Of a DNA stretch of 64,000 nt, positions 5,645 to 53,781 are shown in pieces. The notes under the pieces are model-generated. The model worked only from the letters and a program-made list of their open reading frames with translations. It searched no databases and was not told where the DNA came from. The DNA comes from Octopus sinensis (Eukaryota): NCBI RefSeq assembly GCF_006345805.1, contig NC_042999.1, positions 148,490,001 to 148,554,000 on the forward strand, written 5' to 3'. The position numbers and the translations under genes were made by a program. How positions within the stretch are numbered: position 1 is the first letter of the stretch; every line of letters begins with the position of its first letter.

Positions 5645-5821
5645 TCACACAGTGGTGGCACGTAAATTGTGCAACATATTCAAGATATCCTGAAACAACG
5701 GCCGATGATTTGGTTCCATATCCCAGGTGTGTCGCATGATTCGGTATATTTCAGGAGGGCAGCCGTCTGGGGTCTCCATTCTGTAGCCCCTTTCGACATG
5801 TCGTACAACTTCAGCAAGAGG
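5645..5821 (-). CDS. Csk: Csk last coding exon (PLAEVVRHVERGYRMETPDGCPPEIYRIMRHTWDMEPNHRPLFQDILNMLHNLRATTV*)
   Basis: cttatcaag acceptor after a U-rich tract and TGA at 5645-5647. Typical kinase C-lobe end. Confidence 0.95.
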   Translation of the reverse strand, partial: PLAEVVRHVERGYRMETPDGCPPEIYRIMRHTWDMEPNHRPLFQDILNMLHNLRATTV

Positions 5822-7396: not shown

Positions 7397-7597
<201 letters not shown>

Positions 7598-9952: not shown

Positions 9953-10195
9953 TAATTCAAGAGAACTACAAAAAGATTTTAACAACTGAGACATTCAACT
10001 GTTTGTTATCTGTTCCCACTTCTTCCTCCATTTTTTCCCTAGTGCTTTTGTTTTTGATTTATTCTTTGTATAACGGTTCTTAGATATCTTCCTCAGTCTG
10101 TTATGACTTACTAACTTTACGCAGACATTTAAACTGACTGATTAAATAAATAACATGACCAACATGTGTTTTAAAAATAAAATGATAAGACGTTA

Positions 10196-10300
<105 letters not shown>

Positions 10301-11414: not shown

Positions 11415-11702
<288 letters not shown>

Positions 11703-12659: not shown

Positions 12660-12830
<171 letters not shown>

Positions 12831-13290: not shown

Positions 13291-14527
13291 TGTGCCACAC
13301 CTTGCATAAATGTCCTACTGTTAAAAAAAATTCTATCAAAAAACTTTCATAAAAAAATTGAAATTTATGAACTTAAAATACTTATGAGAGAAATTAAGAA
13401 AAGGTTACAATGCTGATGAAAGAAAAATACAGACATGTGTTTATACATAATGCAACATTCTTTGCTAATTCTTGATTAAACTTATTAAAATAAACCCAAA
13501 ATATCTTTCTCCTTTAAACTTAATTGTATTTTCTTTACCTCTCAAAAAGAAAATGATATATATATTTTTATACATGCATATGTATCCAGACAAATATGCA
13601 TATATAAATATTCAATAGATGAACTATATGTTATTTTGAGGCAAAATTGAGGCAAATATTGCATTATCATCATTATTTAACATCCATCTTCCATGCTGGC
13701 ATAGGTTGGATGGTTTGATAGGAGCAGGCAAACCAGAGAACTGTACCTGCTCCATCATCCGCTTTGGCATGGTTTCTATGGTTGGATGCCCTTCCTAACA
13801 CCAACCACTTTACAGAATGTACCGGATGCTTTTTATGTAGAACTAGTGCCAATGGGGTTGCCAAGTAACTTGCAAGATAAAGATCCCTCAACTGAGAAAA
13901 TACTGAAATGATAACTGAAGATGAAAGTAAATTTTTTCCTACATACAAAATAATCTATATTTAACAAAGCAAATGATTTGCAGTGTTTCTATTAGAAGCA
14001 GTTAATTTATGCAATCACTGCTGTTATAATACAGAAAGTATTTTGCCTTGTCCAGACTTCAATAACACTTCAATAAATGAGTTTCACATTTTTATCAGTA
14101 TAAAAGCTAAAAAATACAACATAAAAATGGTTGTATTCAGTCATGTTAGACATGCAATTATGGTGGGAAAATAACTGCAGATCAAACACTTCAAACATAA
14201 GAAAGAAAGAGAGACGTTGAAATTTTATAACTACATAAAAAAATTAATGTAAGAAATATGAAATTAAAACAACCTGTGGATTATACAAGTTAATTTGAAG
14301 ATGGGAAATGTTTAAGTTAATTCATTTTGTGGAGTTATACCAAATAGACTGCATACATAAATAAACTAACTTTTGTATTGCATACATATTAAAGATATGA
14401 CCTGAATGTATCATGTTATTTCATAGAGAGTTGTTTAGAATTTTGATAAACAGTGGAGGTAAAAATAGTAAAAAGTAAAGCTTTGAATGAACCTTGTTTT
14501 ACACATGCACACAAAGATACATACATA

Positions 14528-18133: not shown

Positions 18134-18236
18134 GTCATCACGGATGCTTCTTTAAGAAAAGTCTGCGCTGCTCTGTTTCTGTCTTTTAGTTGTTTCACAG
18201 CAACAAGCTGTTGGTTGTAGCAGCCTTTATATACAT
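18134..18236 (-). CDS. Csk: Csk exon: kinase N-lobe (DVYKGCYNQQLVAVKQLKDRNRAAQTFLKEASVM+AC), 103 nt, phase 1 to 2
   Basis: tactaacag acceptor and GTAAGT donor. Contains the VAVK lysine and the alphaC glutamate. Confidence 0.96.
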
Positions 18237-42466: not shown

Positions 42467-42686
42467 CTCAACTAAATGTGGTAGACTGTCAAAGAAGACT
42501 TCCTTATCTATAGTTAATTTGTTGTTGCAGTAGACTATATGGTAATGCTCAACTTTCCTCTGGTGACACACACACAATGTGTAGTCTCCGGGGTAATTCT
42601 GGCTTTCTCGCAGTAAAAACAACCCATCTTCCATCATTTTAAGAAGATCTTCAGCTTCTTGACGTGTGATCTTTCCATGAAACCAT
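42467..42686 (-). CDS. Csk: Csk SH2 exon B (canonical-like), 220 nt, phase 2 to 0: [73 protein letters not shown]
   Basis: Acceptor ggtttttgtag|ATGG and donor GAG|gtacat. 1+73 codons, the same length as the human CSK SH2 segment W82-E154 and about two-thirds identical to it from memory. Confidence 0.95.
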
Positions 42687-43037
42687 CTACAAAAACCGGG
42701 CAGATTACACATCACATAGGGTTTAACAGAGCCAGAATGAAAAATTGTGGAAATTCTCAAGCAAGAAAAGATAACCCAGGATTTCATTCTTCTCCTTGAA
42801 AGTAAGGGTTTTTATTAGTAAATTAGGCAATAGTGCAAACTGAAAAATGAACAGCTGTTTTCAAAAACAGTTAATAAATCCAATTGTCCATTGGTATTTA
42901 TTAAACACAGTAACACAAACCATAAAAAAAAACAAATTAATTTAAAAATAAAATTTTAAAAAATTTGTATAAATGTCAGAACTTTAAAACAAAAATATTA
43001 GTTACTGATATGCCTGATTTAATTGTTATTCACTAGC

Positions 43038-43068
<31 letters not shown>

Positions 43069-43188
43069 GTGTGTGTGTGAGCTGACAAATCAATATGAAT
43101 GCATATATCTCCAGGAGAAAAATGTACACACATTAACATATACACACACACATGTATTATATACGTATGCATATACATTACACACAGG

Positions 43189-43259
<71 letters not shown>

Positions 43260-43325
43260 TATATATCCACACATTCATGAGGATACATGAACACACATGC
43301 ACATATATACATAGATATAAATATA

Positions 43326-43364
<39 letters not shown>

Positions 43365-44078
43365 TATGCACACACACAAATATATACATGTATTTGTACA
43401 TATATATTAAATACGTACTATGTATAAAAATATGCATACATATACTATTATATATGCCATACATGTATATGCATCATACATTTGCATATAGACATATACT
43501 CAGACACAAACACACGCACGTTCCACATCATCAGATTTATATCTTGGTGAGCAGATCTTCCATACCATGGGATTTGTATTCTGGCTGTTGTTTGTGCGTT
43601 AATTATAGCAGGCTACAATTAACTAGCAAACTACACGTCACAAACAAGATGAGCAGGTCAGTGATGTTGTCTAGCTCACGTGACCAAAATACATATTTGA
43701 TGATCTGGTTCTCTAATGGCCATGATATAAATCTGATAATGCGAAACACTTTATTGGTCATTTTGTGAATGTAAAATCTACATAAAGTTATATATATATA
43801 TATATCTCAAAAGGATGTGTTATAATACTATTCCACATATGTATATAAATATCAATGTGTGTGTGTGGAGATATATGTATATGTCAATGCAGTTATATAT
43901 GTATGTATGTATGTATATATATAAATGCATTTATGAGGGTGCGTGTATTATATACATATATATACGCACACAAATTTACATATACATACATATATATGGC
44001 TCTGTATACATGTTTGTGTGTGTGTGTAAATGTATAGAAATATACACATAAATAAATACATATTTTATATATATATAT

Positions 44079-44147
<69 letters not shown>

Positions 44148-44200
44148 CATATATATATCTATAAATATAGATTCATACATAAGGTGTGCACACACACACA
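43038..44200. repeat. Compound (TG)n/(TA)n/(CA)n microsatellite field, interrupted by unique sequence at ~43510-43790
   Basis: Directly visible; it accounts for the spurious 241-aa ORF. Confidence 0.9.
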
Positions 44201-45264
44201 TTAACATGATTGATTCCCATCATGCACTTGAATTCCTTTGGAGTTTCCTTAACTCTCAATGGTCTCTACATTGAGAATCTACAGGATTTTCTAAAAGCTA
44301 AAAACCCTAATACCCAGACATTGGTTTGTGAATACCCTCTTTAGCTACTGCACAAGGAAGTTAAGCAAGTTTCCATGAAATATAGACACTGTGAGTGACA
44401 TGTAGAGTTTAGATTGGGCTATCCCTTGAAAGCATGATGTTGGGAATAGATCATTTCATGTCTTTCTTCTAAAATTCCATTCTACTGATTCAAACAATAA
44501 CTATTGAAATCGTAGCAGTCCTATGCCATTACATAAATGAAGCACATTCTTCATTTTACATATGTCATCTTCACAAGAGACCATAACTACATATGCCATT
44601 CATAATCAAATCATTGTTGTTGTTGTTGTTTGGCAGCATGTCAGCTCTGATCAAGTATTACTGTGATCAAAAGCATTCCAACCATGACCAATCTCCTTTA
44701 CCATGTTTAGTTTATTCTGGACAACAGTATCTAACGCCCTCTATTGAGAAGGTAGGGAGTGATTTTAATAATAATGATAATAATAATAATCCTTTCTGCT
44801 ATAGGTACAAGGCCAGAAATTATTGAGGAAACAGAATTTTTGAGGAAACGGAAGTCAATATTATCAACCCTGAAAGGATGAAAGGCAAATTTGACCTCAG
44901 TGGCATTTGAACTCAAAATGTAAAGATCCGGAAGGAATGCCAATGAACATTTCGTCTGAAGCGCTGATTATTCTGCCAGCTTGTTGCCTTATAAATAAAT
45001 AAAATAAATTAATTAAATAATAATAATAATCCTTTCTACTGGAAGTACAAAAGGCCCCAAATTTTGAGGAAGGGATTAAGTTGATTACATTGACCCCAGT
45101 GCGTAACTGGTACTTATTTAATTGACCCTGAAAGGATGAAAGGCAAAGTTGAGCCCGGTGGAATTTGAACTTAGAACGTAGCGATGGGCGAAATACTACT
45201 AAGCATTTTGTCCAGCGTGCTAACAATTCTGCTAGCTCACCGCTTTCAATAATAATAATAATAA

Positions 45265-45300
<36 letters not shown>

Positions 45301-45811
45301 TAATAATAATAATAATGATAATAATAATTATAATCCTTCCTACTGTTGGTACAAGGACTGAAATTTTTGGGGAGGGGATAATAACTATTATAATAATAAT
45401 AGTCATCATTTAATGTCTGTTGTCCATGCAATTACAGCAATGGCATCAAATTTTTGCATTAGTCTAGCAATTTTAGGAGGAGGGGAAAGTTGATGACATC
45501 AACCAGAGTGTCCAAATGGGAGTCATTTTATCAACCCCGATAGGATGAAAATCGATCTCGGCAGTATTTGAACTCAGAACACAGAGTGAGAAGAAAGGTT
45601 GCTAAACATTTTGTCCAGTATGTTAATGAGTCTGCCAGATTGTTGCCTCAATAATAATAATAATAATAATAATTATTATTACAGCTGCAGAAAACAGTGT
45701 TATCAGGGATGGCGAGGATACTTAAGAAGGTTCTTGGCATCCAAGGCTACTTGTTGTAACCCGATGTTAGGATTCTTTTCTTTTCCAACAGTCTAATCTG
45801 TTGAGTGTATA

Positions 45812-45848
<37 letters not shown>

Positions 45849-46068
45849 TAGTTTTGTCTAATAACAAATGCAGGATATTTCCGTTCATATTTTGAATTGC
45901 TGTATTCCTGTGTTCTTTTCATTTTTCACTTTGAAACCAAGGAATACAGACATACTGTCGAAGTACTGTTCAATTCAATATACGGAGTCCAATATCTATT
46001 ACAAATTGTATCATGCTCTTCTTATTGATTATTTATCTTTGTGAATGGTTACATCAATCTTCATAAAT

Positions 46069-46099
<31 letters not shown>

Positions 46100-49000
46100 A
46101 ATAAAAATCATAATAAAAATGATAATAATCCTTCCTACTATAGGCACAAGGCCCGAAATTTTTGGGGGAGGGGTTAAGTCGATTATATCAACCCCGATAC
46201 GCCACTGGTATTTAATTTATTGACACTAAAAGGACAAAAGGCAAAGTCGACCATGGCAGAATTTGAACTCAGAATGTAAAGACAGACAAAATGCCGCTAA
46301 GCATTTTGCCTGGTGTGGTAATGATTCTGCCAACTCACTGCCTTGATATATGATAATAATAAAGAGAAACCTACATCTATTTTTGAGATATGAACCCATG
46401 AAGTTTTAACACAATTATGTATTGTAAAATTTGCAGTTTAGTATTTTAAATAAAATAAAATAAAAACCACGAGAAAGTAAAGATTTATAAATAGATTTAC
46501 TATTTACCGGCTATAATTTCAATCCCCTCATAATATTCTTATTTATGAAGTTTGGAAATTTGCAATTTTTAACCTAAAATCTACTCTACACAAAACAATG
46601 CCTTGCATATTTATTGCTGATACATTCCAAGAGATTCAAATGGGAATAACATGCTAATCGCTGTTGTGTTTTGTCACAAGAGAACAACTTCTCCTTTACA
46701 AAGAATGTGTTTGTAACTTATCACATAAGGTACTGCCAATCTGTAATCATATCAGGTATTGCCTACCTGTTAACATATGGTGCTGCCTGCCTATTATATA
46801 GGCTGCTGTCTAACTATTATCAACTATATCTAACTTATATTTTGTGCAACCTACTGGTTATAATATAGGGTGATGCCTATCATGTGGTAAGATAATTGCT
46901 ATCATATAAAGTGCTTCCTAGGTGCTACGCTATACTAAACTGCCTAACTGTTATCACAGAGAATACTGACTATCATTACCATGTAGGATGTTGCTTATGC
47001 ATCATGTAGGATAGCACTTAACTGTTGACATACAGGATGCTGCGTAACACAATAGCAGCCTGTGTGCATATTACAAGAATCTAACTACATCCATGCAAAT
47101 CTGAAAAATGGCAAGGGCGAAAATTAAGTAGGCATTTCAATTCAGCGATAAGTAAACATCTGCATGCCTGAAAAATAAATGAATCCCAAGAATATTAGAT
47201 AAGTTAGGGTTTGAGGCAAAGGGTTGTTGCTTGTGGTGGCAGCGACAGCAGTGGTGGTAGTGGTGGTGGTGGCGGTAAAAATAAACAGTTAGAATCCAGG
47301 CTGCATCTGTGAGAGTCCAAAGCAGAAAAAAAAAAGAAAAAAAAAGAAAAATGAAAAACAAAACAAGAAAAAATTAAATGCAAAAAAAAAATAATAATAA
47401 TTGCGTACAAATGGTCATCTCTGTTGCTGTTATTATTATAATAATCATTATTATTATTACTACTTATATTAATGTATCTAATAAGAGAAGTCATTCAGAA
47501 AAGTGATTGCTGTTATTTACTAAACTAATTATTTATCTAGCAAATGTGATGATGATCAAAAGAACTCTATAGTTCTAATACTAATATTCACTAATTAGTA
47601 AAAACTAAATGAAAACCTTCAGTCACCATTCATGACACTCTCTTTCTGATAGTAATCTAGTCACTGTACAAAACGATTTAACTGTAGATGCATATTGTTA
47701 GGAAACGGGCCCCTATCACAACTGTGTAATATCCAGAATAGATATATGAACAGGAGTGGCATCGGTGCCACTTAAATCAACACTAAAGAACAGAACAGAA
47801 AGGAAATCTTTCAAAGAGAATCTATTCCTAAGTATTCTTGAATAAGTTGGTTATCGAGTTAAACTCTCAGAAATTCCAAATGCTCAAAATCTAAGCACAT
47901 TGAATGTGTGTTGCATGTACAAGTATTTTCTCAAAGACAAGATCATATTTACATATGCTTATTCGTGTGTGTGTGTGTGTGTGTGTGTGTATGTCTGTGT
48001 GTATATATATGCATGTATGTATGTGCAAAAATCTGCCAATTTTTTTTTTTTTTAATATACACTACACTTTGAAAGACAGCTGTCATAAACAAGACTGGAT
48101 ATAAAGATAAAACACAAGAGACAAACTAATGAACAAAATAAAATACAACAATAACAACAACAAAAAAATAAAACAACAATTTGACTGACATTCCAGAGAG
48201 ATGACAAGATAAACCAATTAATGACTGACGGATCCAGACTGACAATAACGGACAACCAATATATAGAGATAAGGTAAAAAAGAAAGGAAACCAATGGATT
48301 TGGTTGTAATTTCTTCAATGAAAATATACAGTTTAATTTTTCAAAAATTAAATCATTTCACAAAGCCAGAAAAAGTATAAATCCAGCTATGAGTCAATTG
48401 CTCCAAAAATGAGTTCACATCAAATTAATAATTATTTAGGTTTTTTTCTTTTTTTTTTTCCTTTTGCTTTTTTTTTTTTTGGAGTAAATCCAATTATTCA
48501 AGTTGATTACAAACATTACGGTATTTCATTTTTTATTTTTCTTTCAATGGCAATGAGGAGTATGGGATAGAGAAAGGAGGGAGGCAAGATAACAATCTAG
48601 GGAACAAAGAAGGCTGGTTGTTCTGTTCTGAGGAATTATTAAAAGAATCTCTATGAACCTGTAAGATATAGAACATCTATATATATACGTATGTATATAT
48701 GCACATCTATAAAATGGAGTCAACAAAAAAAAATAAATTGTATGGAATACAAATAGAACAGTGTGTGTGCGCACTTGTAAGTGTGGCTGTGTGTGTGTGC
48801 ATGCGCATGTAACTACATATACCTACAGACTATAAAGTAAATACTTTACTATATAATGCAATAACAGTGTTAATAGATACAGTATAAACTAAACATGACC
48901 TATCAGAACTTTAAAAAAAAACCTGAAACAGCAAAAATAACTTATAAAACTAAATAGCATTGAGTTTTAAGAATTGCAGAAGTTGGTTCTTTTATTGCAA

Positions 49001-49909
49001 AGTAACAACTGGGATGCTTAATCTATGTTATTTATGGAATAGATGATACAGAAGTGTAAGAAGACCAAACCAAGAGAAGAGCAGTGGCTCTGTTAGATGA
49101 GAAAACATTTCCAAACTACTTGAAATTGCTTTAGAGCTAAAAATGAAGGATTATTCTAATGAGCAGGAAATTCAGGAAGCTCTTCAACTATATAATTAAA
49201 TTCTAAATCACACTTAAACAGAAGTACATAATAAGGGTTCATGCCTTCAGTATAAAGCATCAATAATGAAAAAAAAAAAAAAATGACATAAATAAATAGG
49301 AATCGGACAAATGAAGAAGCTTGCTTAAGATATTCAATGCAAGAAAAAAAATAATTAATTTTCGTTTAATAAGCTCGAGAATTAATTTCTAATTATTTAA
49401 CACTCGATTATCCCAGAAATTTAATCACTGACAAAATTAGTTTCTAATTAAACTGCAAAGCTTCTAATTCAATAAACCCAATGCCGACAGAGTTATAACT
49501 GATGTATTTGAGAAAAGTGATGAGTAAATATATGAGATTGGATGCTGAGAGAGAAAAAATAAAAACATTTTTTTTTTTTAAAAACAGAACCCGCTGTAGT
49601 TTATACATTGTTGTGAATATTTGGATATGTATGTGTGGTTGGATGTTTTATGAGCTATCTCATGATTTAGTGACACATCTAGTCATAAAATATAAGTAGA
49701 GCAAAGATGCAAGTTATGCAATTATCTTCAGTTTGTTGTTTAATCACAAACTAGTAATAGCTGCAAAATATTTTCACTATCTGGCAGACATGCACAAATG
49801 TTTAATAAATCAAAAAAACAAAGAAAACTGTGTTGAGAACAGAGGCGGCTCTGATGGAAAGAACGGAGGTGCCTCCAATGAATGGAAGTATCTCCAAAGA
49901 AAAGTATAC

Positions 49910-50135
49910 CTCAACTAACTCCAGTAGAGTATCGAACTGAAGATCACCACCATCGACTTCAACCTTATTGTTAGTCTGTAGCACACGATAGTGCTCCACT
50001 ACATCCCCAGGGATGACTAGCGACAAGGTGTAATCCCCAGGGTAATGGCCATTCTCTCGTACAAGGAACGACCCTATCATGTGTCCAGCCAGAAGAGATT
50101 CTGCTTCTTCTCGGCTAACTTTTCCATGATACCAT
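49910..50135 (-). CDS. Csk: Csk alternative SH2 exon A (divergent), 226 nt, phase 2 to 0: WYHGKVSREEAESLLAGHMIGSFLVRENGHYPGDYTLSLVIPGDVVEHYRVLQTNNKVEVDGGDLQFDTLLELVE
   Basis: Acceptor gtatttgttgcag|ATGG and donor GAG|gtatac. Open frame of 1+75 codons with SH2 motifs (W.HG, FLVRE, YPGDYTL, VEHY, LVE). Same boundaries as exon B. Confidence 0.88.
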
Positions 50136-53680: not shown

Positions 53681-53781
53681 GGCATAGTCTGTAAGGAGAC
53701 TTCTTGTCTCTTTTGAACATAATTTGCTGGAATCATTCCTTCTCTGCCATATGAATTTTTAGCTTGGTACCAATTAGGGTC
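53681..53781 (-). CDS. Csk: Csk exon: SH3 C-terminal half ([33 protein letters not shown]+CC), 101 nt, phase 0 to 2
   Basis: ttttag acceptor and GTAAGT donor. The peptide closely resembles human [29 protein letters not shown] (recalled). Confidence 0.95.

Follow-up and report, generated by a model that had tools for sequence, protein, structure and literature searches.

The gene for the tyrosine kinase Csk of Octopus sinensis very probably carries a tandem-duplicated pair of mutually exclusive exons for its SH2 domain, an ancient pair in which both copies are under purifying selection. The gene lies on the minus strand of the 64,000-nucleotide (nt) stretch of DNA analysed here, which we call the window (G000:C3:148490001-148554000), and plain coordinates are window positions throughout. 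Csk switches off Src-family kinases and is their master brake. We refer to the two exons as SH2-up, which encodes a divergent SH2 type, and SH2-down, which encodes the canonical Csk type; they correspond to exons A and B of an initial annotation of the window, which had proposed that splicing selects one of them. The two exons are homologous, have the same phases and intact splice sites and are conserved elsewhere, a combination that is far from chance.

Exon structure and reading frame of octopus Csk

The gene was mapped by tblastn with human CSK, which found all Csk exons in order, and the exon chain was then rebuilt from the sequence as read. Within the window it comprises the exon for the second half of the SH3 domain (SH3b), the two SH2 exons and seven more exons, the last of which ends with the stop codon at 5645 (Table 1); the first SH3 coding exon is located outside, about 28 kb upstream (G000:C3:148582329-148582451). 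Neither tblastn nor a genome search detected a third SH2 exon within the window. The constitutive exons are exact matches to O. sinensis proteins, and the protein encoded by SH3b is identical to residues 47-81 of XP_029633373 (P0018). The domains follow each other in the order SH3-SH2-kinase, and database matches are named tyrosine-protein kinase CSK. Unlike Src-family kinases, the protein has no tyrosine in its activation loop and ends with ...NMLHNLRATTV, lacking the regulatory tyrosine; the absence of both tyrosines is a feature of the Csk family (PMC10016382 and general knowledge).

The splice phases tie each message to a single SH2 exon. SH3b closes with ...ATGCC/gtaagt and leaves CC, and both SH2 exons begin ag/ATGG (phase 2) and end GTTGAG/gt (phase 0), so that either of them completes the CC to a proline codon that is followed by tryptophan. 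The swapped part begins with this Trp, the first residue of the SH2 domain, and takes in most of that domain through the conserved ...LVE, and the next constitutive exon opens with CACTATGAG (HYEKDADGLC). If SH2-up is joined to SH2-down, the second exon is read out of frame and an early stop follows; if both are skipped, the product reads ...QTMPTMRKML...AAG and terminates in the next exon. As the length of each SH2 exon is 1 modulo 3, both double inclusion and double skipping are non-productive. In the mechanism that we propose each Csk mRNA would take either SH2-up or SH2-down, and the next constitutive exon would complete the domain at its C-terminus. The reading frame would enforce exclusivity by sending mRNAs with both exons or with none into an early stop, and nonsense-mediated decay (NMD) would presumably clear these aberrant mRNAs. 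The same arithmetic holds in oyster and abalone, where the divergent exon has 226 and 223 nt, respectively, and the canonical exon 220 nt.

In octopus the two exons are of nearly equal length (226 vs 220 nt), share their phases, have no coding exon between them and encode peptides that are 49% identical, close to the value of about 48% estimated by hand in the initial annotation. Against the Pfam SH2 profile (PF00017), the cutoff of which is 21 bits, SH2-up reaches 75.7 and SH2-down 94.1 bits. SH2-down is 66% identical to human CSK and 82% identical to squid-like transcripts, SH2-up 48% identical to the human protein. A protein search with the SH2-up segment returned CSK isoform X3 of Octopus bimaculoides at 100% identity. 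The gene models of three Octopus species contain each SH2 exon alone, with the other exons shared: SH2-up is present in isoforms X1, X3 and X4 of O. sinensis, X1, X3, X4 and X6 of O. bimaculoides and CAI9720295 of O. vulgaris, SH2-down in X2 and X5 of O. sinensis, X2 and X5 of O. bimaculoides and CAI9720294 and CAI9720296 of O. vulgaris. SH2-up also occurs in GAB1600530 of Argonauta hians, where SH2-down was not seen. Since the RefSeq and ENA models hold each exon in separate isoforms, mutual exclusivity is also the annotators' reading. Re-reading the sequence and rebuilding the exon chain reproduced the coordinates, splice sites, phases and premature stops of the initial annotation to the base, and the mutual exclusivity it had deduced is supported by the separate isoform models of the three species as well as by the frame arithmetic.

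Two other arrangements would give a different picture of the locus. In the first, a linker exon or alternative splice sites would join both exons in frame to form a tandem-SH2 Csk. Two gene models do string a divergent and a canonical SH2 domain together, namely P0234 of Mizuhopecten yessoensis (525 amino acids) and the Biomphalaria-like P0237 (metaclust, 442 amino acids), but in one of them the first exon is cut short at a site inside it and in the other intron sequence is read through (LVEVYFFPLHGLCTFSQ), and both look like annotation artefacts that arose from an unrecognised exon pair. All models of the NCBI-pipeline type that we examined (XP_ or isoform X), which come from six genera, have one SH2 domain, and in octopus, oyster and abalone the phases are such that a direct junction of the two exons shifts the frame, making a tandem-SH2 protein extremely improbable. 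In the second arrangement the exons would belong to different transcription units, with SH2-up, for example, residing in a separate or nested gene. A Csk-like paralogue with an SH2 exon of its own is indeed located on the same strand about 33 kb downstream, outside the window. However, the SH3 and kinase exons on either side of the two SH2 exons occur only once in the window, annotated isoforms join each of them to the same flanking exons, and the same two-exon arrangement is found inside the compact Csk genes of oyster and abalone (about 14-18 kb, compared with more than 87 kb in octopus); we thus give separate units practically no credence. The exons are, in our reading, alternatives within one gene.

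Table 1. Csk exons and a conserved intron flank in the window, in the direction of transcription
Feature	Position	Strand	Details
SH3b, constitutive, second half of SH3 domain (DPNWYQAKN...SLQTMP)	53681..53781	-	101 nt; phase 2 end
SH2-up, divergent 'EVDGGD'-type, (P)WYHGKVSREEAESLL...EVDGGDLQFDTLLELVE	49910..50135	-	226 nt; tgcag/ATGG ... GTTGAG/gtatac
Conserved intron flank, candidate splicing-regulatory	49795..49909	-	just 3' of SH2-up donor
SH2-down, canonical Csk-type	42467..42686	-	220 nt; tgtag/ATGG ... GTTGAG/gtacat
Constitutive exon: C-terminal end of SH2 (HYEKDADGLCTRL), SH2-kinase linker, Gly loop	19969..20137	-	169 nt; phase 0 start
Kinase exon (DVYKGCYNQQLVAVKQLK...)	18134..18236	-	103 nt
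Kinase exon	12661..12819	-	159 nt
Kinase exon, catalytic loop HRDLAARN	11457..11556	-	100 nt; donor GTGAGT
Kinase exon, DFG and activation loop without tyrosine	10205..10300	-	96 nt
Kinase exon	7463..7549	-	87 nt
Last coding exon, ...NLRATTV, then stop TGA	5645..5821	-	177 nt

Further variation, as in the O. sinensis isoforms X4 and X5 (P0033, P0015), is annotated at the 5' end of the gene, outside the window. In O. sinensis the Csk protein can start from at least two alternative coding exons (MRSLFATN... and MPMDRQ...), and another one (MKGVSIQHH...) is annotated in O. bimaculoides. Some isoforms lack the first SH3 exon (MRSLFATN/DPNWY) and would thereby keep only half of the SH3 domain. Each of these 5' variants occurs with either SH2 exon in the annotation. 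The 7.2-kb intron between the SH2 exons is rich in microsatellites of the TA/CA type and in low-complexity AT-rich runs (43026-44220 and 44730-46220), repeats that yield long spurious open reading frames on both strands.

Age of the exon pair and selection on SH2-up

The divergent exon is widespread among molluscs. In the Pacific oyster we aligned six RefSeq Csk isoforms and one UniProt entry, which, short N-terminal variants aside, differ only by the swapped SH2 exon, and the divergent oyster exon shares the hallmarks of SH2-up, i.e. WYHGK.SREEAE, FLVR, NK.EVDGGD and an EF loop that is longer by one residue. SH2 sequences of this EVDGGD type are annotated or present in Ostrea, Saccostrea, Crassostrea virginica, Argopecten, Mizuhopecten, Haliotis and a Biomphalaria-like snail, and they were also found in several genomic open reading frames from a search of a representative library. 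A tree built from 52 SH2-exon peptides unites all EVDGGD-type exons in one clade (ultrafast bootstrap (UFboot) 98, approximate likelihood-ratio test (aLRT) 89), with the canonical exons placed among generic metazoan Csk. The Csk loci of C. virginica (L015) and H. cracherodii (L016) carry the divergent exon upstream of the canonical one, and the remaining exons from SH3b to the stop codon have the same lengths in octopus, oyster and abalone (101, 169, 103, 159, 100, 96, 87 and 177 nt). Because orthologous divergent exons in the same order are found in cephalopods, bivalves and gastropods, the pair predates the divergence of these three classes and is much older than the initial annotation had guessed. 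The split between cephalopods, bivalves and gastropods dates to the early Palaeozoic.

Csk genes with three SH2 exons were observed as well. In the bivalve-like contigs L019/L020 (10049-14112; ENA ERZ25073280/85) an EVDGGD-type exon (10049-10270) and two canonical-type exons (13429-13662 and 13888-14112), which are about 225 nt apart, are located between SH3b and the rest of Csk. L018 (9161-12156; ENA ERZ25070167) and L017 (106-1960; Logan SRR30853453) show three tandem SH2 exons in one Csk gene, none of which is of the EVDGGD type, so that multiplication of the Csk SH2 exon is not confined to the octopus lineage or to the octopus type.

The protein sequence encoded by SH2-up is identical in Octopus and Argonauta. 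Its ratio of non-synonymous to synonymous substitution rates (dN/dS, omega) was derived from two Logan contigs, L001 from another octopod and L012 from a distant cephalopod. L001, the introns of which are about 70-87% identical to those of the window, differs from SH2-up at 4 of 226 nt, all of them synonymous third positions, with 0 non-synonymous changes. L012 carries the same 226-nt divergent exon, with acceptor ttccag and donor GTATAT, and comparison with SH2-up gave a dN of 0.096, a dS of 1.9, which is saturated, and an omega of 0.05. Judged by these substitutions, SH2-up is clearly under strong purifying selection and functional. The initial annotation had spoken of an old duplication under selection and had suggested computing dN/dS for exon A and looking for the exon in relatives; the value of 0.05, a divergent clade that spans three mollusc classes and an exon that is intact in cephalopods, bivalves and gastropods lend strong support to this view.

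SH2-up might still be a decaying pseudo-exon, or a mere 'poison' exon that creates NMD targets and lowers the amount of Csk while its protein sequence is irrelevant. This would fit the premature stop that double inclusion does create and the fact that the full-length Logan transcripts found all contain the canonical exon. A poison exon, however, does not need a conserved open SH2 frame, and neither reading explains a protein that is identical between Octopus and Argonauta, the ratio of 0 non-synonymous to 4 synonymous changes relative to L001, the omega relative to L012 (with dS saturated) or the SH2 motifs and the EVDGGD signature that are kept across three mollusc classes. Moreover, many annotated isoforms use SH2-up alone. 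We therefore consider this explanation very unlikely, and its pseudo-exon version is effectively excluded.

Structure prediction agrees with SH2-up being a functional coding exon. The AlphaFold model of the SH2-up isoform has a predicted local distance difference test (pLDDT) score of 80-91 over the SH2 domain and exhibits the normal pattern of SH2 secondary structure elements. The best Foldseek match of this isoform is full-length Csk (1K9A) with a template modelling (TM) score of 0.69-0.71, and the solved domains closest to SH2-up by sequence are CSK SH2 structures. The divergent isoform is thus predicted to fold as a normal Csk.

SH2-type-specific residues and their putative effects

We compared the two SH2 types in an alignment of 14 canonical and 14 divergent mollusc exons, using human CSK numbering. 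R89 (alphaA2), R107 (betaB5, FLVRE) and H128 (betaD4) are invariant in all 28 exons, and Tyr129 is also kept in both types. Since these residues are retained, both SH2 types should be able to bind phosphotyrosine (pTyr).

Other positions separate the types. Position 133 is an invariant Tyr in the canonical exons and A, T, R, Q or I, but never aromatic, in the divergent ones. The EF loop reads (T/S)ID-EE in the canonical type and EVDGGD, with one Gly inserted, in the divergent type. Position 111 is mostly Asn in canonical exons and always His in divergent exons, and position 150 (M150 in human CSK) is polar or Pro in the former and hydrophobic in the latter. At position 127 canonical exons have Glu and most non-cephalopod divergent exons Asp; octopus SH2-up has kept the Glu. 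The EF loop generally shapes the pockets of SH2 domains for the residues C-terminal to the pTyr.

The SH2 domain of Csk localises the kinase through pTyr adaptors and also activates it allosterically (PMC10016382). Y133 and E147 are needed for activation triggered by SH2 ligands, N148 and M150 activate the kinase domain, and E154 is suppressive (PMC10016382). E127 is the residue that separates the SH2 specificities of Csk and Chk, ligand choice being set largely by Glu127 in Csk and Ile167 in Chk (PMC10016382). As the exon swap touches both the surface for ligand specificity and the one for communication between SH2 and kinase, a change in docking specificity, which the initial annotation had put forward and which the residue pattern makes plausible, would be only half of the likely story; the residues that separate the types speak for a change in coupling (Tyr133) no less than for one in ligand choice (EF loop). 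We infer that the gene produces two Csk kinases that differ in the pTyr ligands by which they are recruited and/or in the way in which ligand binding is transmitted to the kinase.

The isoforms could also differ mainly in intramolecular regulation, that is in SH2-kinase coupling and basal activity, rather than in docking specificity. The cleanest type-specific difference, Tyr133, concerns a residue that takes part in SH2-ligand-stimulated activation, and position 150, which differs too, belongs with N148 to the residues that activate the kinase (PMC10016382). On the other hand, the EF loop is remodelled in a type-specific manner as well, including the inserted Gly, and position 127, the Csk/Chk specificity switch, is Asp in most non-cephalopod divergent exons. 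We regard a mainly intramolecular difference as a real but somewhat doubtful possibility; effects on coupling and on docking are not mutually exclusive.

Taking age and residues together, we tentatively suggest, as a proposal that is about as likely to fail as to hold and perhaps slightly more so, that Csk of molluscs, and perhaps of lophotrochozoans more widely, has had a splice-selectable SH2 cassette since before the cephalopod-bivalve-gastropod split. The cassette would comprise two exons, or three in some lineages, and its divergent EVDGGD-type SH2 domain, which lacks Tyr133, would confer a different set of pTyr ligands and a different activation response, making the exon choice the splicing counterpart of the Csk and Chk genes.

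Splice-site choice, transcripts and relation to known systems

The 5' splice sites of the SH2 exons differ from those of the other exons. Six of the seven constitutive donors of the octopus gene are GTAAGT and one is GTGAGT, as compared with GTATAC for SH2-up and GTACAT for SH2-down. In the genes of octopus, oyster and abalone, with L012 included among the SH2 donors, a G at position +5 is absent from 7/7 SH2-exon donors and from 2/25 constitutive donors (hypergeometric p ~1e-5), so that the weak donors to which the initial annotation had pointed turn out to be a conserved property. Directly downstream of the SH2-up donor, the intron flank at 49795-49909 is about 99% identical to the octopod contig L001, compared with about 70-87% in the surrounding intron. 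The choice between the exons would presumably be regulated by trans-acting factors via the conserved sub-optimal 5' splice sites and this conserved flank.

Other known ways of enforcing exclusivity were considered. GTATAC resembles the U12 consensus GTATCC, but neither downstream acceptor has a U12-type branch site in front of it, and the SH2 donors of relatives (GTATAT, GTATTA, GTAGCT) do not suit an incompatibility of U12 and U2 splice sites either. Steric hindrance cannot apply because the SH2 exons are 7.2 kb apart. Docking/selector RNA pairing is unsupported; in the 500-nt flanks of the relevant exons that an RNAduplex scan covered, z-scores were near 0, an uninformative outcome.

Among Logan transcript contigs the canonical form is found in full length once in octopus (P0017), about 50 times in squid-like sequences and more than 280 times in oyster. 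In the oyster contig L014 (protein P0085) the SH3 exons are spliced to the divergent exon, after which the contig runs into the downstream intron. As L014 joins the SH3 exons to the divergent exon, the latter is used in oyster RNA. A search of the protein collection gave no spliced octopus transcript with SH2-up, whether complete or partial. How many RefSeq transcript models a form has says nothing about its abundance.

Several observations weigh against an ancient, functional and mutually exclusive pair. The octopus isoforms with either exon are computational gene models (XP_ and CAI entries), and in Logan transcripts the divergent form is represented by one partial oyster contig and by no full-length one. 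Since the full-length Logan transcripts carry the canonical exon, the divergent isoform may be minor or restricted to certain tissues. The decay of double-inclusion transcripts by NMD is assumed. In the SH2-exon tree the cephalopod SH2-up pair sits on a long stem branch, and its properties may differ from those of the bivalve and gastropod versions; in cephalopod SH2-up Asn replaces the phosphate-contacting Ser109. Finally, the evidence on the divergent SH2 type comes from sequence and predicted structure. Set against the shared phases, the frame arithmetic, the separate isoform models and the conservation across three classes, these points leave the mutually exclusive pair very probable.

Mutually exclusive exons that arose by tandem duplication are known from FGFR2 (IIIb/IIIc), JNK/MAPK8-10 (exons 6a/6b) and PKM (exons 9/10). 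Like the Csk exons, these are neighbouring homologous exons of near-equal length and the same phase, one of which is used per mRNA, and the exchange affects part of a domain with a binding or regulatory role. They differ from the Csk pair, which swaps the SH2 phosphotyrosine reader of a cytoplasmic kinase, has exons 7.2 kb apart and splice sites that are not of the U12 type. Exon pairs of this origin are described, in PMC9741552, PMC8373072 and PMC5740500, as rare, ancient and functionally important. Another parallel is coq-2 of helminths, molluscs and annelids, another ancient exon pair that is shared across invertebrate phyla and changes the choice of substrate or ligand (PMC7434440). It concerns a different protein and pathway, and its effect was demonstrated experimentally (PMC7434440), whereas the effect in Csk is deduced from sequence.

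In function the nearest equivalent is the vertebrate couple CSK and CHK/MATK, two Csk-family kinases of SH3-SH2-kinase architecture that both inhibit Src-family kinases. These are two genes whose products differ over the whole protein; molluscs swap about 75 SH2 residues within one gene, and, unlike CSK and CHK/MATK, the mollusc isoforms are identical in SH3 domain, SH2 end, linker and kinase domain. By analogy, the exon pair would parallel, at the level of splicing, the Csk/Chk gene pair of vertebrates.

In open-access papers and preprints we found no description of mutually exclusive exons in Csk or in any SH2 domain. The initial annotation had likewise known of none; while the absence of a paper bears this out, both isoforms are already implicit in the RefSeq/ENA annotation, and the mechanism is the standard one of tandem-duplicated mutually exclusive exons. 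What is added here is the deep conservation, the selection, the type-specific residues and the three-exon variants. If the proposal holds, a large animal phylum tunes the place and manner of the Src-family brake by splicing and not by gene duplication, which would make Csk a clean example for the question of alternative splicing versus gene duplication. The pair would also be a natural paired experiment, in which the same SH3 domain, linker and kinase are combined with two SH2 modules, allowing SH2 specificity to be set against SH2-kinase coupling, for example at Tyr133. In mollusc annotations it flags mis-built gene models with tandem SH2 domains.

Additional Csk-like sequences are found around the gene and elsewhere in the genome. 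The tandem paralogue mentioned above extends over G000:C3:148424970-148462089 on the minus strand, about 33 kb 3' of the Csk stop codon, and because of its position a Csk-like duplication has happened at this locus. Its SH2 exon (148461868-148462086, L004; WFHGNITRQEAEGILKENIDGSFLIRESKTNIGEYSLSVYHQSEIIHYHIQFKNKQISLDAKNYFKNLYKLIE) has the same phases and is 49% identical to SH2-down and 36% identical to SH2-up; the paralogue includes at least two kinase-exon matches, is very divergent and forms the longest branch of the SH2-exon tree. Upstream of the window, the long Csk intron that follows the first SH3 exon contains an isolated minus-strand fragment (G000:C3:148561565-148561681), possibly a stray exon duplicate or a pseudo-exon, which shares 72% identity with the kinase exon of the catalytic loop (residues 300-338). 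Long, apparently intronless matches to the tyrosine kinase domain, 39-44% identical to Csk, are located at G000:C8:86248810-86249637, C26:7665208-7666014, C7755:89919-91287 and C8697:135433-136793; some have SH2-like parts and some contain stop codons, and they could represent retrocopies or else different kinase genes.

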